This document shows positions 630 to 61,886 of a DNA stretch of 64,000 bases, piece after piece. The notes under the pieces are model-generated. The model was not told where the DNA came from, searched no databases, and saw only the letters and a program-made list of their open reading frames with translations. Numbering within the stretch: position 1 is the first letter of the stretch; every line of letters begins with the position of its first letter. Both the position numbers and the translations under genes were made by a program. The DNA lies in NCBI GenBank assembly GCA_002269645.1, contig NIVC01000129.1:108755-172754 (forward strand), written 5' to 3'. The stretch is from Macrostomum lignano (lineage: Eukaryota).

Positions 630-788
630 GTTTAGGTTCGGGTTAGGGTTAGGGTTAGACTTTACTGTCAAATTATTGTATATTTTCACTCAGTTGTCTT
701 TCCTGCCTTAGTCCCAAATCCCAGATCCCTCGCCACGTACTCAAAGCCTCTCTTACATTAAAATATGTAATAAAAAATCCTCAACCAG

Positions 789-1169
789 GTGGACGTGTGG
801 AGCGTTGGCGTCATTTTCTACCAGTGCCTCTACGGCCAGAAGCCGTTCGGTAACAACATGACCCAGGCCGACATCCTGCGCAACCACACCATACTGAAGG
901 CGTTAAAAATCGATTTCCCCCAATCAACGCCCGGCAACTGCAAGGTGTCCGAGCCGGCCAAGAACTTCATCCGCCGGTGCGTCACCTACGACAAGCGCCT
1001 ACGCCCCGATGTGTTCCAACTGGCCGAGGACGAGTATCTGAAGTCGAAGGCGCAATTGAAATTCGACACCACTACGGCGGCCTACTCGCCAGCTGAAGTT
1101 GGCAGCGGCGGCGGCGGCAGCGGCGGCAGCAGCGCCTGGGGTCTCATGCCCCCGCCTGGGCCAGTCTGA
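789..1169 (+). CDS. TLK: Tousled-like kinase, terminal coding exon (gene starts upstream of the window)
   Basis: Acceptor CCAG ends at 788. VDVWSVGVIFYQCLYGQKPFG...DIL...TILKA...F...AKNFIRRC matches kinase subdomains IX-XI of TLK. Stop TGA at 1167-1169. Confidence 0.92.
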   Translation: MDVWSVGVIFYQCLYGQKPFGNNMTQADILRNHTILKALKIDFPQSTPGNCKVSEPAKNFIRRCVTYDKRLRPDVFQLAEDEYLKSKAQLKFDTTTAAYSPAEVGSGGGGSGGSSAWGLMPPPGPV

Positions 1170-4390: not shown

Positions 4391-19006
<14,616 letters not shown>

Positions 19007-27700: not shown

Positions 27701-30700
27701 GCCGAGTGGTCAAACCAAATTCAAATGTCAAGTAGCAAGCCTACAACACAACGTCTGCGCAAATAGTGCCCCTCTCCACTCACCCGAATTTTCTTTTGCT
27801 AATTAAATAAAAGACCAATTACGCTCGTAGAGATTTGGTGCAATTTGTCTGCCAATAAAACAGTTAAATCCATTCCGCCTTTGAAATTGTGTCTCTATGC
27901 AGTGCTGGCACCTTGAGAACTTGTCCAAATTTCTTTTATGCAACCTCAGATTCTGGAAATCAACAATCGGCGTCTGGTGGCGGTGACGCCGGCGGTTGCT
28001 ACGGAGATTCTGCAGCAGTGCGGCCGAGGGGCCGGTCACGTGACTATCAGACTGGGCCGGCGGGCGGAGGCCAGCGGATTCGATGGTGGCAGCTGCGGCG
28101 AACAGGTTGATGGAGAGGATACGGTACAGCGGCTGCTGAGGGCTGCGACTGCCGCGCCGGGGTCTGGGTGAGTGATGGGGAGTGATTCTGGCTCATAGGG
28201 AGTGATTTTGGATTATGGGGAGTGCTTTTGGCTCATGGGAGTGACTTTGGCTCATGGGGAGTGATTTTGGCTCATGGAGAGTGATTTTGGCTCATGGGAG
28301 TGACTTTGGCTCATGGGAGTGACTTTGGCTCATGGGGAGTGATTTTGGCTCATAGGGAGTGATTTTGGCTCATGGAGAGTGATTCTGGCTCATAGGGAGT
28401 GATTTTGGATTATGGGGAGTGCTTTTGGCTCATGGGAGTGACTTTGGCTCATGGGGAGTGATTTTGGCTCATGAGGAGTGATTTTGGTTCATGGGGAATG
28501 ATTTTGGTTCATGGGGAGTGATTTTGGTTCATTGGGAGTGATTTTGGCTCATGGGGAGTGATTTTGGTTCATGGGGAGTGATTTTGGTTCATGGGGAGTG
28601 ATTTTGGTTCATGGGGAGTGATTTTGGTTCATGGGGAGTGATTTTGGTTCATGGGGAATGATTTTGGCTCATGGAGAGTGATTTTGGTTCATGGGGAATG
28701 ATTTTGGTTCATTGGGAATGATTTTGGTTCATGGGGAGTGATTTTGGTTCATGGGGAATGATTTGGTTCATGGGGAATGATGTTGGTTCATGGGGAATGA
28801 TTTTGGTTCATGGGGAATGATTTTGGTTCATGAGGAGTGATTTTGGTTCATGGGGAATGATTTTGGTTCATGGGGAATGATTTTGGTTCATGAGGAGTGA
28901 TTTTGGTTCATGGGGAATGATTTTGGTTCATGGGGAATGATTTTGGTTCATGGGGAGTGATTTTGGTTCATTGGGAGTGATTTTGGTTCATGAGGAGTGA
29001 TTTTGGTTCATGGGGAATGATTTTGGTTCATGGGGAATGATTTTGGTTCATTGGGAATGATTTTGGTTCATGGGGAGTGATTTTGGTTCATGGGGAATGA
29101 TTTGGTTCATGGGGAATGATTTTGGTTCATGGGGAATGATTTTGGTTCATGGGGAGTGATTTTGGTTCATGGGGAGTGATTTTGGTTCATGGGGAGTGAT
29201 TTTGGTTCATGGGGAATGATTTTGGCTCATGGAGAGTGATTTTGGTTCATGAGGAGTGATTTTGGTTCATGGGGAGTGATTTTGGTTCATTGGGAGTGAT
29301 TTTGGTTCATGAGGAGTGATTTTGGTTCATGGGGAGTGATTTTGGTTCATGAGGAGTGATTTTGGTTCATAGGGAGTGATTTTGGTTCATTGGGAGTGAT
29401 TTTGGTTCATGGGGAGTGATTTTGGTTCATGGGGAGTGATTTTGGTTCATTGGGAATGATTTTGGCTCATGAGGAGTGATTTTGGTTCATGGGGAGTGAT
29501 TTTGGTTCATGAGGAGTGATTTTGGTTCATGGGGAGTGATTTTGGTTCATTGGGAGTGATTTTGGTTCATGAGGAGTGATTTTGGTTCATGGGGAGTGAT
29601 TTTGGTTCATGAGGAGTGATTTTGGTTCATGAGGAGTGATTTTGGTTCATGAGGAGTGATTTTGGTTCATGGGGAGTGATTTTGGTTCATTGGGAGTGAT
29701 TTTGGTTCATGAGGAGTGATTTTGGTTCATTGGGAGTGATTTTGGTTCATTGGGAATGATTTTGGCTCATGAGGAGTGATTTTGGTTCATGGGGAGTGAT
29801 TTTGGTTCATTGGGAGTGATTTTGGTTCATGGGGAGTGATTTTGGTTCATTGGGAGTGATTTTGGTTCATGAGGAGTGATTTTGGTTCATGGGGAATGAT
29901 TTTGGTTCATGGGGAATGATTTTGGTTCATTGGGAATGATTTTGGTTCATGGGGAGTGATTTTGGTTCATGGGGAATGATTTGGTTCATGGGGAATGATT
30001 TTGGTTCATGGGGAATGATTTTGGTTCATGGGGAGTGATTTTGGTTCATGGGGAGTGATTTTGGTTCATAGGGAGTGATTTTGGTTCATGAGGAGTGATT
30101 TTGGTTCATGGGGAGTGATTTTGGTTCATGAGGAGTGATTTTGGTTCATGGGGAGTGATTTTGGTTCATGGGGAGTGATTTTGGTTCATTGGGAGTGATT
30201 TTGGTTCATGGGGAGTGATTTTGGTTCATGGGGAGTGATTTTGGTTCATTGGGAATGATTTTGGCTCATGAGGAGTGATTTTGGTTCATGGGGAGTGATT
30301 TTGGTTCATGAGGAGTGATTTTGGTTCATGGGGAGTGATTTTGGTTCATTGGGAGTGATTTTGGTTCATGGGGAGTGATTTTGGTTCATGGGAGTGATTT
30401 TGGTTCATTGGGAATGATTTTGGCTCATGAGGAGTGATTTTGGTTCATGGGGAGTGATTTTGGTTCATTGGGAGTGATTTTGGTTCATGAGGAGTGATTT
30501 AGGTTCATGGGGAGTGATTTTGGTTCATTGGGAATGATTTTGGTTCATGGGGAGTGATTTTGGTTCATTACTTGACTTGAAAAACATTACTCAAAAAAGT
30601 ACGCATTGGAACATTCACACCCTGTTATCACTGCAGCCAGTCGCTGTCCGATCTGCAGTCGCATTTTGCTTCGACGGGAACGTCGAATCAGTCGATGAAA

Positions 30701-32766
30701 AACGACTTTCCGGATCGACAGTTGCAGCAGCAGCTGCAGCCGAAATGTAAGAGTGCCTTTGGAGACTGGCGCTGGCGCCCAATTTACAGACACAGTTGGC
30801 GCCCGATTTACAGACAGATGGTGCCGATTTACAGACAGATGGTGCCCAATTTACAGACACATTTGGCGCCCAATTTACAGACACAGATGGTGCCCAATTT
30901 ACATACACAGATGGTGCCCAATTTACATACACAGATGGCGCCCAATTTACATACACAGATGGTGCCCGATTTACAGACAGATGGTGCCCAATTTACAGAC
31001 ACAGATGGTGCCCAATTTACATACACAGATGGTGCCCAATTTACATACACAGATGGCGCCCAATTTACATACACAGATGGTGCCCGATTTACAGACAGAT
31101 GGTGCCCAATTTACAGACACATTTGGCGCCCAATTTACAGACACAGATGGTGCCCAATTTACATACACAGATGGCGCCCAATTTACATACACAGATGGTG
31201 CCCAATTTACAGACACAGATGGTGCCCGATTTACAGACAGATGGTGCCCAATTTACAGACACATTTGGCGCCCAATTTACAGACACAGATGGTGCCCAAT
31301 TTACATACACAGATGGTGCCCAATTTACAGACACAGATGGTGCCCAATTTACAGACACAGATGGTGCCCAATTTACAGACACAGATGGTGCCCGATTTAC
31401 AGACAGATGGTGCCCAATTTACAGACACATTTGGCGCCCAATTTACAGACACAGATGGTGCCCAATTTACAGACACATTTGGCGCCCAATTTACAGACAG
31501 ATGGCGCCCAATTTACAGACAGATGGCGCCCAATATACAGACACAGATGGTGCCCAATTTACAGACACAGATGGTGCCCAATTTACAGACACAGATGGTG
31601 CCCGATTTACAGACAGATGGTGCCCAATTTACAGACACAGATGGTGCCCGATTTACAGACAGATGGCGCCCAATTTACAGACAGATGGCGCCCAATTTAC
31701 AGACACAGATGGTGCCCAATTTACAGACACATTTGGCGCCCAATTTACAGACACAGATGGTGCCCAATTTACAGACAGATGGCGCCCAAAATACAGACAC
31801 AGATGGTGCCCAATTTACAGACACAGATGGTGCCCAATTTACAGACACAGATGGTGCCCGATTTACAGACAGATGGTGCCCAAATTACAGAGGCAGATGG
31901 TGCCCAATTTACAGACACAGATGGTGCCCAATTTACAGACACAGATGGTGCCCAATTTACAGACACAGATGGTGCCCAATTTACAGACAGATGGTACCCA
32001 ATTTACAGACACAGATGGTACCCAATTTACAGACACAGATTGTGCCCAATTTACAGACAGATGGCGCCCAATTTACAGACACAGATGCTGCCCAATTTAC
32101 AGAGGCAGATGGTGCCCAATTTACAGACACAGATGGTGCCCAATTTACAGACAGATGGCGCCCAATTTACAGACACAGATGCTGCCCAATTTACAGACAC
32201 AGATGGTACCCAATTTACAGACACAGATGGTGCCTTCGTTTTTAAGCCACAGTTTCAAAAGAGACATGTAAAAGTGCATTTTCTTTAAGTAGAGTTGAAA
32301 AGTAGTATATGCAGCGAAAGTATTCCAGTTAAAACAGGTTAATTTTCCAACACTAGGCCGTGACCAGCAGCCGCCTCATCCGCGCCTCTCAATCGACGCT
32401 CGTCGCCAACTGCTGGAGGCGCACGCCGAGGCGCAGAGCCTTCGCGACCGCCTAGCAACGGAGCGCGGTCGGACCTCACGTTGGGAGCTGGCCGCCCAGA
32501 TGGAGGAGCGCCGCCTATCGGAGGCGCGCGACCGACTGGCGGCCACCCAGGGCGAGTTCGAGCAGACGGAGAAGCTGCTGGCCGAGACGCTGGCCGAGAC
32601 CGACCAGCTGAGACGTCGGGCAGCCGAGCTGGACGCCTGCGCCAACGAGATGCTCGAACGGTTCGGCCAGCAGCCGAGCAACACCGGAAGCATGGTGGCT
32701 TCGAGTCGCGGTAGCAACGTCATTGTAATAACCAAATCCTCGAAGCACCTGTCTGGCAAGGCTTGA
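24701..32766 (+). CDS. PPP1R9: Neurabin/spinophilin-like PDZ plus coiled-coil protein, 5 exons, ~468 aa
   Basis: Exons 24701-25053, 26744-27059, 27950-28167, 30637-30746, 32357-32766; in phase, 1407 nt. N-terminal GRVARIRQMFQ resembles the neurabin actin-binding start. ELERRANRLRQLTIEL precedes a PDZ (GLGVGL...IGVYVKSLTPGG.AERDGRIRLGDQILEIN) as in neurabin. C-terminal coiled coil. Confidence 0.78.
25090..25497. repeat. Diverged ~12-bp purine-rich repeat (GAGATGGAGAGT) in neurabin-like intron 1
   Basis: Seen directly. Confidence 0.85.
26205..26620. repeat. Diverged ~22-bp repeat (ATCCACCGATAATCTCCTTGTA) in neurabin-like intron 1
   Basis: Seen directly. Confidence 0.85.
27097..27638. repeat. 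21/20-bp minisatellite (CTCTGTTGCAATTTAAGCTCC grading into GCGCCCCTGTTGCAAGTGAA) in intron 2
   Basis: Seen directly; the unit changes progressively along the array. Confidence 0.93.
28176..30569. repeat. 2.4-kb 20-bp minisatellite (GGGGAGTGATTTTGGTTCAT) filling intron 3
   Basis: About 120 units starting directly after the donor at 28168. Confidence 0.98.
30770..32235. repeat. 24-bp minisatellite (ACAGATGGTGCCCAATTTACAGAC) filling intron 4
   Basis: Source of the three ~500-aa pseudo-ORFs. Confidence 0.97.
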
Positions 32767-34275: not shown

Positions 34276-34770
34276 CTACTCGGGCACAGCGTAGCTACCA
34301 TCGTTCACTTTGTCGATGATATCGTGCGGATTCGAACCATCGACCGTGCAGCCAACGGACTGAGCTGTGCCAAGAATCTCTTTAACAGTGCCGGCCATAG
34401 TCTTAGCCATCGATCTCGGCCGCATCGTCTTAGCGATGTCAACAACCTCGTCGAAGGTGATGTTGCCAGTGTGCTTGACGTGTTTGACCTTCTTGCGATC
34501 GCGCGGCGGCTCGTTCAGAGCGCGGATGACCAAGGCGGAAGCCGTGGGCACCACGCTGGCCACCGCCTGACGGTTCTGAATGACCAGCTTCACCGTCACC
34601 TTCAAGCCCTTCCATTCCTTCGTAGCCTTGGCAATGTCTTCGCCGACCTTCTTTGGCGACAGGCCAAGCGGCCCAATTTTTGGCGCCAACGACGCTGTGG
34701 CGCCGACTTCGCCTCCGACGGCGCGCAGATAAACAATGTTGATAGCGGTCGGGTCAATCTTGGGCGGCAT
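34276..34770 (-). CDS. RPL12: 60S ribosomal protein L12 (uL11), 164 aa, intronless CDS
   Basis: MPPKIDP...[38 protein letters not shown]...[14 protein letters not shown]...PRDRKK. AATAAA on the minus strand at 34193-34198. Confidence 0.98.
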
Positions 34771-34897
34771 GGCTGCGGCTGCTGTCTCTTAGAGGGTCGA
34801 ACCTGCTCAGCTGGAAAGTTTTGAGTTTTCAAAGCAATTAGGGATTAGTGAAAGAATGCTCTAAGAGTTACTTTCTTTTTGAGGGAAGCAAGGAGAT

Positions 34898-36240
34898 AGG
34901 ACAGGTGAGAGATGCAATAGAGACAGGTGAGAGATGCAATACAGACAGGTGAGAGATGCAATACAGACAGGTGTGAGAGATGCAATAGAGACAGTTGAGA
35001 GATGCAATAGAGACGGGTGAGAGATGCAATACAGACAGTTGAGAGATGCAATAGAGACAGTTGAGAGATGCAATACAGACAGTTGAGAGATGCAATAGAG
35101 ACAGTTGAGAGATGCAATAGAGACGGGTGAGAGATGCAATACAGACAGTTGAGAGATGCAATAGAGACAGTTGAGAGATGCAATACAGACAGTTGAGAGA
35201 TGCAATAGAGACAGTTGAGAGATGCAATAGAGACGGGTGAGAGATGCAATACAGACAGTTGAGAGATGCAATAGAGACGGGTGAGAGATGCAATAGAGAC
35301 AGGTGAGAGATGCAATACAGACAGGTGTGAGAGATGCAATACAGACAGGTAAGAAATGCAGTACAGACAGGTGAGAGATGCAATACAGACAGGTAAGAAA
35401 TGCAGTACAGACAGGTGAGAGATGCAATACAGACAGGTGAGAAATGCAGTACAGACAGGTGAGAGATGCAATACAGACAGGTGAGAAATGCAATACAGAC
35501 AGGTGAGAAATGCAGTACAGACAGGTGAGAGATGCAATACAGACAGGTGAGAGATGCAATACAGACAGGTAAGAAATGCAGTACAGACAGGTGAGAAATG
35601 CAGTACAGACAGGTGAGAGATGCAATACAGACAGGTGAGAGATGCAATACAGACAGGTAAGAAATGCAGTACAGACAGGTGAGAAATGCAGTACAGACAG
35701 GTGAGAGATGCAATACAGACAGGCGAGAGATGCAATACAGACAGGTGAGAGATGCAATACAGACAGGTAAGAAATGCAGTACAGACAGGTGAGAAATGCA
35801 GTACAGACAGGTGAGAGATGCAATACAGACAGGTGAGAGATGCAATACAGACAGGTAAGAAATGCAGTACAGACAGGTGAGAAATGCAATACAGACAGGT
35901 GAGAGATGCAATACAGACAGTTGAGAGATGCAATACAGACAGGTGAGAAATGCAATACAGACAGGTGAGAGATGCAATACAGACAGGTGAGAGATGCAAT
36001 AGAGACGGGTGAGAGATGCAATAGAGACGGGTGAGATGCAATACAGACAGGTGAGAGAGAGATGCAATACAGACAGGTGAGAGATGCAATACAGACAGGT
36101 GAGAGATACAATACAGACAGGTGAGAGATGCAATACAGACAGGTGAGAGATGCAATACAGACAGATGTGAGAGATGAGAGAAGATACAGGTGAGAGAAGA
36201 TACAAAAAGAAGACAGGTGAGAGAAGATACAAAAAAGAAG
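34898..36240. repeat. 22-bp minisatellite (GAGATGCAATACAGACAGGTGA) between calumenin and RPL12
   Basis: About 58 units; explains the 416-484 aa pseudo-ORFs. Confidence 0.97.
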
Positions 36241-36674
36241 ACAGTAAGCAATAATAAAAAACAGAGAAACAAAACAATTAAAATTATGCTAAAAAGCAAA
36301 CAGACTAATTATGCAGGCATTTTAATGCATGTGTATGCGCGTTAATACAGTAAATCCACAATGAATAAAGCTTGAAGCAGATTTACCAGAAAATCAAGCA
36401 GCAGAACACGTACCGACAATCATTTTGCAACATTATGGGAGTTGAAAAAAAGAGTATCGAATGAAACCGAAAGCTCCGCTCTTATACCACCAGTAAAGGG
36501 AAATACTAACAGACAAATTGTAAGGCCTTATAAGAGTTGGCGAGCTCAGATATGAATCAACAGTCGAACTATTTAACAAAAATCTGAATAAAATAAATCA
36601 AATGAATTATAAGAAAATTCAAATTGTTCGCTCTTAACTCCGTTTGCAAAATGTCAGAACAAGAACTTGTCTTC

Positions 36675-38663
36675 TCAAAGCTCTTCGTGATTGCGCAACG
36701 CTTCGCCAAAGTCCGTAGCCTGACTGCCGGCAAAGATGTCGTGATGGTCCAGAATCTCTTGTTTTGATAAGCGGCCGTCTTTGTCCAAATCAGCTTGGCT
36801 GAACAGGTGCTTGGTCTCCGCGTCCACCTGCAGTTTGGGGGGGGGGTGAAATTTTAGTAGAGCTGATGGGAGAAAGTCTGTGGGGTGGGGATTAAGGGCG
36901 ATTCTATGGGGGGTTGAGGGCGATTCTATGGCGGATTGAGGACGATTCTATTTGAGATTAAGGGCGATTCTATAGGGGGATTAAGAGCGGATTCTATGAG
37001 GGGATTAAGGGCGATTCTATGGGGGATTAAGGGCGATTCTATGGGGGATTAGGGCGATTCTATGGGGGGATTAAGGGCGATTCTATAGGGGGATTAGGGC
37101 GATTCTATGGCGGATTGAGGACGATTCTATTTGAGATTAGGGGCGATTCTATAGGGGGATTAAGAGCGGATTCTATGAGGGGATTAAGGGCGATTATATG
37201 GGGGATTAAGGGCGATTCTATGGGGGATTAGGGCGATTCTATGGGGGGATTAAGGGCGATTCTATAGGGGGATTAGGGCGATTCTATGGCGGATTGAGGA
37301 CGATTCTATTTGAGATTAAGGGCGATTCTATAGGGGGATTAAGAGCGGATTCTATGAGGGGATTAAGGGCGATTCTATGGGGGATTAAGGGCGATTCTAT
37401 GGGGATTAGGGCGATTCTATGGGGGGATTAAGGGCGATTCTATAGGGGGATTAGGGCGATTCTATGGCGGATTGAGGACGATTCTATTTGAGATTAGGGG
37501 CGATTCTATAGGGGATTAAGAGCGGATTCTATGAGGGGATTAAGGGCGATTATATGGGGGATTAAGGGCGATTCTATGGGGGATTAGGGCGATTCTATGG
37601 GGGGATTAAGGGCGATTCTATAGGGGGATTAGGGCGATTCTATGGCGGATTGAGGACGATTCTATTTGAGATTAAGGGCGATTCTATAGGGGGATTAAGA
37701 GCGGATTCTATGAGGGGATTAAAGGCGATTATATGAGGGATTAAGAGCGGATTCTATGAGGGGATTAAGGGCGATTATATGGGGGGATTAAGGGCGATTC
37801 TATAGGGGGATTAGGGCGATTCTATAGGGGGATTAGGGCGATTCTATAGGGGGATTAGGGCGATTCTATGGGGGATTAAGGGCGATTCTATAGGGGGATT
37901 AGGGCGATTCTATAGGGGGGGGGATTAGGGCGATTCTATGGGGGGATTAAGGGCGGTTCTATGAGGGTCAACGGCGATTCTATGGGGGAATAAGGGCGAT
38001 TCTATGGGGATTAAGGGGATTAAGGATAAATTCAAAACTATATAGTCAAGAAATGCCTTAGTTCAGGCACTAAAACTCACCTGATCATAATTAGTCGGCA
38101 GTATCCAGGCCGATACCTCAGCCAGATCAAGCTTGCCATCCTTATTAGCGTCCCGCTGCGATCGGAACGTGTCCCGCTCCTGCTGGACCCAGTCCGGCTC
38201 CGGCTCCCCGCTGTCCTTGCCCGACCACATGTCGCCGATGTATTCGGCTTCGTCAATCGCGCCGTCGCCGTTACGGTCGAGATCTTCCAGCGATTCCAAG
38301 GCGACAAGTTCGCGCATGTGGGCAGCCTCCTCCGGATGGGCGAAGTCGGTGAACTCGGCCAGGCTCAGCAGGCCGTCGGCGTCTCGGTCGGCGCGTTGCC
38401 AACGGCGACGCTCCCGTTCGATTGTCTTGGTGGTGTGCGGGCCTGGGGATGGGCCGAACACCTTCGTCTGGGGGATGGGAAGGGGGCTGATCATGCTCAT
38501 ATCTGCATGTCTGTGTATTTATAGCCACAGTGGCCTGTCTGTGTCTGTCTGTCTGTCTGTCTGTATGCCTGTCTGTTTGATTTAGTTTCTGTCTGCCTGC
38601 CCGTCTGCCTGTTTGTCCTAGTATCTGTCTGTCTGTCTGTCTCTCTCTGTCTGTCTGCCTGCC

Positions 38664-45479: not shown

Positions 45480-46365
45480 AATAATCAGGTAAGTCGCAAA
45501 AAGGATCAGGTAAGTCGCAAAAGAAGCAAACTAAGTCGCAAAAAGGATCAGGTAAGTCGCAACAGGAATCAGGTAAGTCGCAAAAGAAGCAAACTAAGTC
45601 GCAAAAAGGATCAGGTAAGTCGCAAAAGGGTTAGGTAAGTCGCAAAAGGATTAGGTAAGTCGCAAAAGGGTTAGGTAAGTCGCAAAAGGGTTAGGTAAGT
45701 CGCAAAAAGGATCAGGTAAGTCGCAAAAAGGATCAGGTAAGTCGCAAAAAGAATCAGGTAAGTCGCAAAAGAAGCAAACTAAGTCGCAAAAGGATCAGCT
45801 AAGTCGCAAAAGGATTAGGTAAGTCGCAAAAAGGATTAGGTAAGTCGCAAAAGGGTTAGGTAAGTCGCAAAAGGATTAGGTAAGTTGTAAAAATAATCAG
45901 GTAAGTCGCAAAAAGGATCAGGTAAGTCGCAAAAGAAGCAAACTAAGTCGCAAAAGGATCAGCTAAGTCGCAAAAGGATTAGGTAAGTCGCAAAAAGGAT
46001 TAGGTAAGTCGCAAAAAGGATTAGGTAAGTCGCAAAAGGGTTAGGTAAGTCGCAAAAAGGATTAGGTAAGTCGCAAAAAGAATCAGGTAAGTCGCAAAAG
46101 GATTAGGTAAGTCGCAAAAGGGTTAGGTAAGTCGCAAAAGGATTAGGTAAGTCGCAAAAGGGTTAGGTAAGTCGCAAAAGGATTAGGTAAGTCGCAAAAA
46201 GGATTAGGTAAGTCGCAAAAAGAATCAGGTAAGTCGCAAAAGGATCAGCTAAGTCGCAAAAGGATTAGGTAAGTCGCAAAAGGATTAGGTAAGTCGCAAA
46301 AGGGTTAGGTAAGTCGCAAAAAGGATTAGGTAAGTCGCAAAAAGAAGCAACTAAGTCGCAATAAG
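45480..46365. repeat. 20-21-bp minisatellite (GGTAAGTCGCAAAAAGGATTA) inside the hAT-type element
   Basis: About 42 units. Confidence 0.95.
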
Positions 46366-50401: not shown

Positions 50402-54519
<4,118 letters not shown>

Positions 54520-57107: not shown

Positions 57108-57357
57108 TCCTTATGAACTTTCTGAGTCGCACAAATAACAAAAAATTACATCAATTTACTCAAAAGACGGATTTGCATAAAAATCGTGTTTAATAAATTC
57201 CGATTGCCGACCATTTCTGAAGCGGATTCTTTCGCCGAGAAGGTTTATTTTTTTAAAAATGAGTATAAAGTGTCCGGTAAACGCAAATTTCAGCCGAAAA
57301 AAGCTTACGCCACAGACGGGCCTAGAAAGTCGGGTTCATCAAGAATGCCGATGCCGG

Positions 57358-58647
57358 TCACTCCTCCTTGGGCTCGGCATCAGCAGCGGCGGCGGCGGCG
57401 GCGGCGGCGGCTGCAGCATCTGCAGGCTTCGAGGTGCTGTTCTGCGAGCTACCAGCGTTGGACTCGCCGTCTTTCTTGGCCTTGTCTTCCTCCTTGCGCT
57501 GCCAGGGCACGCTGAGGTAGAAGAAGTTCGACTCGCGGTGATACGGCAGCACCATGTTCTTGAGCTCGGCGAACTCCTCGACATACTTCTTGATCCGTTC
57601 GGCCTTCTTGCGGTTAAGCACCACAGGCTGGGTGCCGTCCGCGATCAGCGTGGTCTTGGCCGTGGCGTAGTCGTCCTTGAACGAGTCGTACAGCTTGTCC
57701 ATCTTCTTCGGGTCCAGCTGGTGCAGCTTCTTGGCCTTCAGGTCGTTGATCTCATCCCGGATCTCCGTCATGTCCGTGTTCTGCGCGGTGAAGACGTTGG
57801 CCAGGTTGTCCTCCTTGCTGGTCTCGTAGAAGCTCTGCATCTTCTCGAACACCTTGATCCTGGTGCGCACGTGGCTGACCAGGTTGTTCAGCTTGCTCTC
57901 CTCGTCCTTGCCATCGTTCATCAGCTGGTTGTAGTCGGGGAAGATGCTGAGCTCCATGTCCGTGCGGCTCGTGTCTGTCGAGAACAGCGCAGCCAGGCCC
58001 TTGCCCTCCGAGGTCTTCAGGATCTTCTCGTCGAAGGAGCGGAACACCGACTGGTCGGCCTTGCGCATGTTGTCGGTGAACTTGGCCAGACCGGTCTTCT
58101 GCGCGCTCTCCTGACCCTTGGCCTTGGCCTTGGCCGGGCTGGCGCCGCCTTCTGCTTTGGCGTCGGCGCCGTCCGCGCTGTCCGGGCTCGCGCCACCGCC
58201 AGGCGTCTTCTTTCGTCGGCGCCGTTTTTTGCGCTTCTCGCCTGCGCTGGCGGCGTCTTTTTCGTCTGCGATCGGCTCGCCGAAGGGCGACAGGAACAGC
58301 GGGTAGGCCTCGGCCAGGGTCATGTCCTTGTTCTTGTCGTTGCCAGTCTCTTTGTTAAGGAAGCAGTAGCGCTCCTGAAGCAGGTAGAACATCTTCATCT
58401 TGAAGAAGAGCGCCTTCTCGTCGGGGCTGAGGAAGGACGGCTGCGTGAGGTCGGCGGTGGCCGAGGTGAAATCGGTGGGACCGGCCTCCATCTTGCAGAG
58501 GTTCCGCATGATCCTCTTGCAGTCATCTGTCAGTATGAGGTTCTCGTTGCGCTTGTCAATCACAATGTCGCGGTCTTTGAGGTTCACCCGCATTACTCCA
58601 TCGTCTGGGCCGACGGAGACCCGCTTCTGAGAGGGTTGCTCAGCCAT
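57358..58647 (-). CDS. Unrecognised intronless 429-aa protein (charged, helical, basic NLS-like run, poly-Ala tail)
   Basis: Non-repetitive ATG-to-stop ORF with strong G/C third-position bias (AAG, GAC, TTC, AAC). AATAAA on the minus strand at ~57244-57249. No family motif recognised. Confidence 0.85.
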   Translation of the reverse strand: MAEQPSQKRVSVGPDDGVMRVNLKDRDIVIDKRNENLILTDDCKRIMRNLCKMEAGPTDFTSATADLTQPSFLSPDEKALFFKMKMFYLLQERYCFLNKETGNDKNKDMTLAEAYPLFLSPFGEPIADEKDAASAGEKRKKRRRRKKTPGGGASPDSADGADAKAEGGASPAKAKAKGQESAQKTGLAKFTDNMRKADQSVFRSFDEKILKTSEGKGLAALFSTDTSRTDMELSIFPDYNQLMNDGKDEESKLNNLVSHVRTRIKVFEKMQSFYETSKEDNLANVFTAQNTDMTEIRDEINDLKAKKLHQLDPKKMDKLYDSFKDDYATAKTTLIADGTQPVVLNRKKAERIKKYVEEFAELKNMVLPYHRESNFFYLSVPWQRKEEDKAKKDGESNAGSSQNSTSKPADAAAAAAAAAAAADAEPKEE

Positions 58648-58909
58648 GGCTTGCGATCCTGTGTTTCCTTGTTTTGCTTTTGCAAGCTGCTTCTTTACAC
58701 GGGGCCCAGCAGATTATTTTCTTTCAAGCCGATTGACACCTCCTGTACAACAGACTGAGTTGCCTTATATAATTGCATTCGTTCCAGCTCTGCCTCGATA
58801 CACAGTTGCCTTTTCAAGTTGTGCCATAGACATCAGATAAATATCTGATTCCGAATTTTATACTGACTCTTATAGGCGCATTTACGAGCTAGTATGGGAA
58901 TCTTAGACA

Positions 58910-59255
58910 CAGAAATTCCAGATTGATCGAGAGGGACCACAGGAATTCCCGATTCAACCACAACCGAAGGTATTCCCGATTCAGATAGGGGAATTCCCGA
59001 TTCAGATAGGGAAATTCCCGATTCAGCCACAACCAAAGGAATTCCCGATTCAACCACAACCAAAGGAATTCCCGAGTAAGATAGGGAATTGCCGATTAAG
59101 ACGGGGAATTCCCAATTCAGATAGGGGAATTCCCAAATCAGTCAGAGCTAAAGTGATTCCCGATTTAGTTAGGGCCAAAGAGATTCCAAGATTCAGATAG
59201 GGGGATTTCCGATTAGGTCAGAAGCAAAGGGATTCAAAGAGGAATTCCCGATTCC
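58910..59255. repeat. Diverged ~21-bp repeat with palindromic GGGAATTCCC core
   Basis: Seen directly. Confidence 0.8.
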
Positions 59256-60830: not shown

Positions 60831-61886
60831 TTAATAGGAGAAGGTGTCCAAAGCCGCTTGAAGTTTGTTGGCGATCTGAAAGATTATATAAGAGAAATAT
60901 TAAATTTAACAGTTCGTTTAATTTTTAAATTTACTACCAAACTAAACAAAGCATACGGGAAGTGACTGAGACACGGAGTGACTGAGACAGGGAGTGACAG
61001 AGACAGGGAGTGACAGAGACAGGGAGTGACTGAGACAGGGAATGACAGAGACAGGGAGTGACTGAGACAGGGAGTGACAGAGACAGGGAGTGACAGAGAC
61101 AGGGAGTGACAGAGACAGGGAGTGACAGAGACAGGGAGTGACAGAGACACGGAGTGACTAAGACAGGGAGTGACAGAGACAGGGAGTGACTAAGACAGGG
61201 AGTGACAGAGACAGGGAGTGACAGAGACACGGAGTGACTAAGACAGGGAGTGACAGAGACAGGGAGTGACAGAGACAGGGAGTGACAGAGACAGGGGGTG
61301 ACTAAGACACGGAGTGACTGAGACAGGGAGTGACTGAGACAGGGAGTGACTGAGACAGGGAGTGACAGAGACAGGGAGTGACTGAGACAGGGAGTGACAG
61401 AGACAGGGAGTGACAGAGACAGGAGTGACTGAGACACGGAGTGACTAAAAAGGAGTGACTGAAATAAAGCGTCAGTGCCGCTCACCTCCTGGTGGAAGCG
61501 CACCTGCTCCCGCAGGAAGTTGGCCATCATGGCTTTGTAGTCGGCGTCCACTTCGCGCCGGAAGTTGTTCATCTCAGCGCACTGGGCGGCGCTGACCAAA
61601 GCGGCCCGACGCGTGGTCTCCTGGGCTTCGGCCGGCGAGATGCGGCCCTCCTCCAGGCCGCGCTGGCAGTCGCGGGCGGTGGCGATGGAGCCGCGGCCGA
61701 TGCTGATGACGGCCGGCAGGCAGGAGATCAGGCCGCTGTACTCGTGCAGCGCCTCGGCCAGCTGGTCCGAGTCCGAGCGGGGCTGCTGCGCCCACAGCTC
61801 CGACACCTGCTGATAGGACTGCCCGGCTGCGTGCATGGCCTGGGACAGCTGGTCCAGCTCTGCGGGGGGGGGGGCGGACAGGCTGG

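Follow-up and report, generated by a model that had tools for sequence, protein, structure and literature searches.

Sequence evidence for a constrained, Macrostomum-restricted single-exon gene in a flatworm, Macrostomum lignano

A 64-kb stretch of the genome of the flatworm Macrostomum lignano (hereafter the window) carries on its minus strand an uninterrupted open reading frame (ORF) of 429 codons, which reads from ATG to TGA at 57358..58647. We are highly confident that this ORF represents a real, constrained and lineage-restricted single-exon gene of Macrostomum. The ATG is preceded, 15 codons upstream, by an in-frame stop codon at 58693-58695. The ORF corresponds to the annotated M. lignano hypothetical protein BOX15_Mlig015388g2 (P0001, 428 aa; hereafter Mlig015388g2), which is one residue shorter; the alignment is reported at 100% identity, with one substitution and one extra Ala in a poly-Ala run of the window protein. 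The coding sequences (CDS) of the window and NCBI copies differ at 3 synonymous sites and 1 non-synonymous site and by an indel of one codon. The annotated copy is located on contig NIVC01000412.1 of assembly GCA_002269645.1, where the NCBI gene model consists of a single exon with a gene for an SNX9-like SH3-PX-BAR sorting nexin on one side and one for a carnitine acyltransferase on the other. The same two genes flank Mlig015388g2 in the window. Because of the shared neighbours and the ~96.5% identity between the window and NIVC01000412.1 across the 4 kb surrounding the gene, the window locus is, judging from these alignments, either an allele or a second copy of the BOX15_Mlig015388g2 locus, or the same locus in another version of the assembly. 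A preliminary description of this DNA had reported an intronless gene of 429 aa, and the ORF was indeed found at that place, with one exon in the NCBI model and colinear with a contig from a congener (L003, see below). A TATA-like element and an AATAAA hexamer flank the ORF and are kept in both genomic copies of the locus; we only infer that they might act as core promoter and polyadenylation signal. The features of the locus are as follows.

57358..58647, minus strand: complete single-exon CDS, 429 aa plus TGA, from the ORF scan and the match to BOX15_Mlig015388g2
58763..58771, minus strand: TATA-like TATATAAGG, candidate core promoter, starting 124 nt upstream of the ATG
57244..57249, minus strand: AATAAA, candidate polyadenylation signal, starting 109 nt past the first base of the stop codon
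57259..58758, plus strand: antisense ORF of 499 aa, no gene, an in-register mirror of the sense ORF, which is rich in G and C at third codon positions (GC3)

The evidence for coding comes mainly from a congener orthologue, P0002 (422 aa), encoded on the 1683-nt contig L003 from the Logan assembly of sequencing run SRR30276812. P0002 shares the start codon with the window ORF and is identical to the window protein at 78% of positions by BLASTP and 81% by phmmer. Between the two coding sequences, the ratio of non-synonymous to synonymous substitution rates (dN/dS) is 0.126, with a dS of 1.27 (Nei-Gojobori), so that the comparison with a congener proposed in the preliminary description points to purifying selection on the ORF. 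The nucleotide differences are distributed as 45/30/158 over codon positions 1/2/3. It could be argued that the minus-strand ORF is spurious and that the real feature of the locus is the antisense ORF, which is the longer of the two, or that there is none; we give this explanation practically no credence. The antisense frame, taken as a control, has a dN/dS of 1.69 and is interrupted by 10 stops in the orthologue. Its openness in the window follows from the lack of TTA, CTA and TCA codons in the sense ORF. The substitutions biased towards position 3 and the behaviour of the antisense frame therefore identify the minus-strand ORF as the selected frame and the antisense ORF as an artefact, and on these comparisons Mlig015388g2 is a genuine, evolutionarily constrained protein-coding gene. 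Gene finders judging by ORF length alone would choose the wrong strand at this locus.

The gene appears to be a taxonomically restricted orphan, with relatives detected in Macrostomum only. We scanned 1.84 billion cluster representatives exhaustively with phmmer, a set that takes in proteins of public genomes as well as of sequencing runs assembled by Logan, and made word-indexed searches of 5.8 billion proteins with the protein, a profile of its C-terminal domain and a profile of the distant paralogue pair P0005/P0006 as queries. At E-values up to 0.001, the phmmer scan returned four proteins, namely the orthologue P0002, P0003 (Mlig011753g3), P0004 and P0005 (Mlig022690g2), of which P0004 was rejected as a low-complexity false match. 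The word-indexed searches contributed just P0006, the congener orthologue of P0005, and bridging via P0005/P0006 through the same 5.8 billion proteins yielded no further relatives. Neither the phmmer scan nor the word-indexed searches recovered any relative outside Macrostomum. The protein, its orthologue and the paralogues had no Pfam match above the gathering threshold, the best scores being 12-17 bits against cut-offs of 27-29. The sub-threshold matches (FHIPEP, TPPII_C, DENND11, Tup_N, Astro_VPg and DUF4922) were inconsistent, none being common to the five family members, and were rejected. Sequence and profile searches of the Protein Data Bank (PDB) with the full length, the N-domain and the C-domain gave chance-level matches only, and we rejected the top ones as such (3f1z, E 0.058; CFAP99, E 0.4; phosphomevalonate kinase, E 1.1). 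Foldseek against the PDB, using an AlphaFold2 model built from a 5-sequence family alignment, gave a meaningless best E-value of 4.5, and an Rfam scan of the whole window gave no match. Thus, the orphan, lineage-specific status proposed in the preliminary description agrees with the sequence, profile and Foldseek checks, none of which gave a relative outside Macrostomum, and no known family or transposable element (TE) protein was matched in the Pfam, PDB or sequence searches.

Within Macrostomum, the family comprises three groups, represented by Mlig015388g2, Mlig011753g3 and Mlig022690g2. The C-domain of BOX15_Mlig011753g3 (P0003) is 52-55% identical to that of Mlig015388g2. Its annotated product of 236 aa covers the C-domain only, and this model is truncated, unlike the full-length Mlig015388g2: an N-domain with 50% identity is encoded by a 133-aa ORF that immediately precedes it in a different frame, so that the locus has the same two-domain layout. 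The frameshift between the two domains falls in a T6 homopolymer, where seven T would read through, and is identical in two 100%-identical contigs (L002, 7471-8711; L001, 5430-6670); it may have arisen through an indel error in long-read assembly, or reflect a genuine frameshift or a pseudogene. Mlig011753g3 is also intron-free, like Mlig015388g2, and has a lower GC3 (0.46-0.62). Mlig022690g2 (P0005) and its congener orthologue P0006 have in common with Mlig015388g2 a C-domain core of ~110 aa (FPDY...KLH...LY) at 30% identity, with a BLASTP E-value of 1e-11 and an hhalign probability of 90% (E 1.6e-6). The latter value is from a non-circular run in which P0005 was left out of the target profile; a first run including P0005 was discarded as circular. 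The N-terminal half of Mlig022690g2/P0006 is unrelated to the N-domain of Mlig015388g2 (hhalign probability 0.1%), and neither the TAKTTLIADGTQPVVLNRKK/NFFYLSVPW end nor the polybasic run of Mlig015388g2 is present in the pair. A family of the same kind is known from M. lignano. Mlig-sperm1 (Mlig020950.g1/g2) is flatworm-specific and testis-expressed, lacks Pfam domains and has homologues in flatworms only (PMC5816591), and thus resembles the Mlig015388g2 family in its narrow lineage. Mlig-sperm1 has 35 M. lignano homologues as well as planarian homologues at BLASTP E-values below 1e-15 (PMC5816591), whereas for Mlig015388g2 we found just two groups of paralogues and nothing from planarians. 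Mlig015388g2 does not belong to the Mlig-sperm1 family, from which it is set apart by the published family description and by our searches, which recovered only Mlig011753g3 and Mlig022690g2 but included no direct alignment with Mlig-sperm1.

The conservation between Mlig015388g2 and its orthologue is unevenly distributed along the protein, with dN/dS values of 0.02 in the N-domain, 0.17 in the linker, 0.10 in the C-domain and 1.2 in the C-terminal tail. The layout is as follows.

58273..58647, minus strand: N-terminal conserved domain, aa 1-125, predicted beta-hairpin and helices, dN/dS 0.02
58357-58407, minus strand: block 1, FFKMKMFYLLQERYCFL, aa 81-97, within the N-domain
58108..58272, minus strand: linker, aa 126-180, low-complexity, predicted disordered, isoelectric point (pI) ~10, three S/T-P sites
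58207..58236, minus strand: polybasic run KRKKRRRRKK, aa 138-147, a motif in the linker resembling a nuclear (NLS) or nucleolar (NoLS) localisation signal
57493..58107, minus strand: C-terminal conserved, predicted mostly helical domain, aa 181-385 (~205 aa), dN/dS 0.10
57358..57492, minus strand: acidic low-complexity tail with poly-Ala and the stop codon, unconstrained, dN/dS ~1.2

The C-domain contains TAKTTLIADGTQPVVLNRKK, block 2 (ERIKKYVEEFAELKNMVLPYHRESNFFYLSVPW, aa 350-382) and the ~110-aa core in common with Mlig022690g2 (around aa 217-326, including FPDY). The two blocks had been picked out in the preliminary description as conserved-looking, and they are truly conserved: block 1 is identical at 17/17 positions in P0002 and at 15/17 in the paralogue, and block 2 at 30/33 positions in P0002. 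The basic run and the Ala/Gly/Lys linker described between the blocks are likewise present, the run at aa 138-147 being followed by an Ala/Gly/Lys/Ser/Pro-rich segment. The tail has a pI of 4.4, and its poly-Ala comprises 12 Ala in the window copy and 11 in the NCBI copy. The protein has a mass of 47.9 kDa, a grand average of hydropathy (GRAVY) of -0.84, a maximum 19-residue hydropathy of 0.73 and a hydrophilic N-terminus, and the hydropathy analysis gave neither a signal peptide nor a transmembrane segment. Two low-confidence AlphaFold2 models both place a beta-hairpin at aa 18-31, with helices as far as ~aa 117, no structure from ~aa 120 to the mid-170s or mid-180s, helices from there to ~aa 362-370, and nothing beyond.

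Mlig015388g2 has a strong GC3 bias. Its GC content by codon position is 0.56/0.39/0.87, the effective number of codons (ENC) is 33.9, and the CDS has 60.7% GC within flanking DNA of 0.40-0.42 GC. The bias itself agrees with the preliminary description, whereas the abundant expression drawn from it does not follow. The coding sequence of M. lignano is the most GC-rich among the flatworms compared (58.7% for the CDS vs 45.9% for the genome), GC-ending codons are favoured genome-wide, and codon-frequency profiles in flatworms have been put down largely to genome-wide mutational bias (PMC6739440). The CDS of Mlig015388g2 is close to this average. Since M. lignano coding sequences favour G or C at codon ends throughout the genome, high GC3 is weak evidence of expression; it marks coding sequence in this species and is no specific evidence of abundant expression. 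The resemblance to RPL12 that had been pointed out is not discriminating either. RPL12 (uL11), located at 34279-34788 on the minus strand with nearly the whole CDS in one open stretch of 170 codons, has a moderate exon bias (GC3 0.71, ENC 42.7), below Mlig015388g2 and several non-ribosomal exons of the window, and ordinary-gene exons elsewhere in the window range from 0.66 to 0.90 in GC3 and from 32.6 to 52.4 in ENC. GC3 is thus unsuitable as an expression proxy in this genome. Other observations hint at transcription. Three Logan contigs, from the orthologue of Mlig015388g2 and the orthologue of a paralogue, each span the whole ORF and extend beyond it by 150-185 nt on the 5' side and by ~220-230 nt on the 3' side, and the 3' ends of contigs from two independent runs agree within 1 nt. 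These mRNA-like dimensions and reproducible ends suggest that the contigs may be transcripts.

The polybasic run is, from sequence, the only interpretable motif in the protein. The segment EKRKKRRRRKK (aa 137-147) is identical at 10/11 residues in the orthologue despite differences at 9/33 nucleotides, and of the next ~35 linker residues composition alone is kept. The classical monopartite NLS consensus is a K-K/R-x-K/R cluster within a part of the protein that is exposed or disordered, and long basic runs often serve as nucleolar signals. KRKKRRRRKK within its low-complexity linker fits such a cluster. Because the run is conserved through synonymous change, nuclear localisation of the protein is plausible. 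The product of Mlig015388g2 is most likely a soluble two-domain protein, helical for the most part, in which the disordered basic linker joins the N-domain to the helical C-domain. We suggest that KRKKRRRRKK would most likely act as a nuclear or nucleolar targeting signal, and that the protein might have a scaffold or adaptor type of role via protein-protein or nucleic-acid binding. This interpretation, a soluble, helical two-domain protein that would serve as scaffold or adaptor in the nucleus or nucleolus, is put forward tentatively, at somewhat less than an even chance.

Several points weigh against this interpretation. RNA, microtubules and acidic membranes are other possible binding partners of polybasic runs. 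In Mlig011753g3, the linker corresponding to that of Mlig015388g2 is only weakly basic. AlphaFold2 gave no confident fold, with a predicted local distance difference test (pLDDT) score of 39.8 from the single sequence and 38.8 from the 5-sequence family alignment, and the description of the domains rests on conservation and low-confidence secondary structure. The gene identifier is absent from the searchable supplementary tables of M. lignano papers; a full-text literature search for it was likewise unmatched. The protein could instead be a cytoplasmic structural or cytoskeletal component, for example of sperm, cilia or epidermis, whose basic run would attach to microtubules, RNA or membranes rather than to importins. 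Its many helices, hydrophilic character and charged linker would suit such a component, and flatworm-specific genes are over-represented among the germline-enriched genes of M. lignano (PMC5816591); the profile match to CFAP99 (E 0.4) is at chance level and is listed merely for completeness. However, the Pfam, PDB and phmmer searches gave no significant similarity to axonemal or cytoskeletal families, and a run of ten K/R residues matches the classical monopartite NLS pattern, so that this alternative seems possible but rather doubtful. There is no evidence for a germline role as such beyond the general germline enrichment of flatworm-specific genes (PMC5816591).

The origin of the gene also allows other explanations. 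Mlig015388g2 might be the orthologue of a widespread eukaryotic protein and have diverged so fast that sequence methods no longer detect the similarity. The dS to the sole congener orthologue has already reached 1.27, the in-genome paralogues are 52% and ~30% identical, which implies quick divergence, and the structure models are too poor for testing homology at the level of the fold. Yet the extremely constrained N-domain (dN/dS 0.02) found no match among the 1.84 billion representatives, and the PDB profile searches, even at E-values up to 10, returned chance matches only; we consider this origin somewhat improbable. A domesticated or still mobile gene derived from a transposon or virus, or a retrogene whose parent contains introns, would account for an intronless CDS among multi-exon neighbours, for paralogues that are likewise continuous ORFs, and for the flanking minisatellites. 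We nevertheless regard it as highly improbable, as Pfam, which covers common transposon, gag, integrase, reverse transcriptase and viral capsid families, gave no match, the copy number is low, the site is fixed and syntenic in both genomic copies, and all detected paralogues are themselves continuous ORFs, no intron-containing parent gene having been found. Around the gene, we found no long terminal repeats, terminal inverted repeats, target-site duplications or flanking direct repeats, and no A-tract downstream beyond AAAAAAATAAA and the ordinary AATAAA that might be a poly(A) remnant. A further possibility is that Mlig015388g2 is the founder of a Macrostomum-specific family with a two-domain fold not seen before and a lineage-specific nuclear or nucleolar role, for instance on the chromatin of germline cells or neoblasts, or in the ribosome biogenesis of a regenerating flatworm, which we judge unlikely.

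Upstream of Mlig015388g2, a minisatellite at 58930-59249, 290-600 nt from the ATG, is composed of 21-28 nt units, each with GGAATTCCCGATTC. All 10 matches of GGAATTCCC in the window fall in this array, where 0.5 would be expected by chance, and several of the copies form the palindrome GGGAATTCCC, which we take to resemble a Rel/kappaB-type site. The array is also found in the second genomic copy (L004) and is absent near the paralogue loci; it may be just one of the many minisatellites of the genome rather than a dedicated regulatory module. The window is unusually dense in long minisatellites, with units of 16-36 nt and lengths up to 7 kb (21-nt unit, 331 copies), and several of them create long spurious multi-frame ORFs, such as those at 30695-32245 and 34845-36299. 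The 29-nt array at 16691-18092 recurs in the paralogue contigs L001 and L002 with ~75% identity. Arrays of (CAGA)n and of the 16-nt AGTGACAGAGACAGGG at 53686-54148 and 60961-61445 lie within or beside the exons of the carnitine acyltransferase and SNX9-like genes and are probably intronic; on either strand they open long reading frames of 'DRQT' or 'CLSV' repeats. At 18433-18837, a pure (CTA)135 trinucleotide array with 96% matches reads as poly-Tyr in one frame. The minisatellite arrays, among others, and the exons of other genes are listed here.

9129-16260: minisatellite array
16691-18092: minisatellite array
28175-30568: minisatellite array
30773-32234: minisatellite array
34900-36176: minisatellite array
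36887-38021: minisatellite array
45487-46342: minisatellite array
774-1166, plus strand: protein kinase C-lobe exon
6781-7554, plus strand: SCAI-family exon
38066-38518, minus strand: EF-hand pair exon

In summary, Mlig015388g2 is an ordinary feature of its genome, already annotated as a hypothetical protein and one of many lineage-restricted genes, and since flatworm genomes hold many such genes its importance alone is small. It is a clean case, with a single exon, a strongly constrained N-domain, a small paralogue family and a conserved polybasic motif. M. lignano permits RNA interference and transgenesis, which makes Mlig015388g2 a convenient test gene for the roles of Macrostomum-specific proteins.
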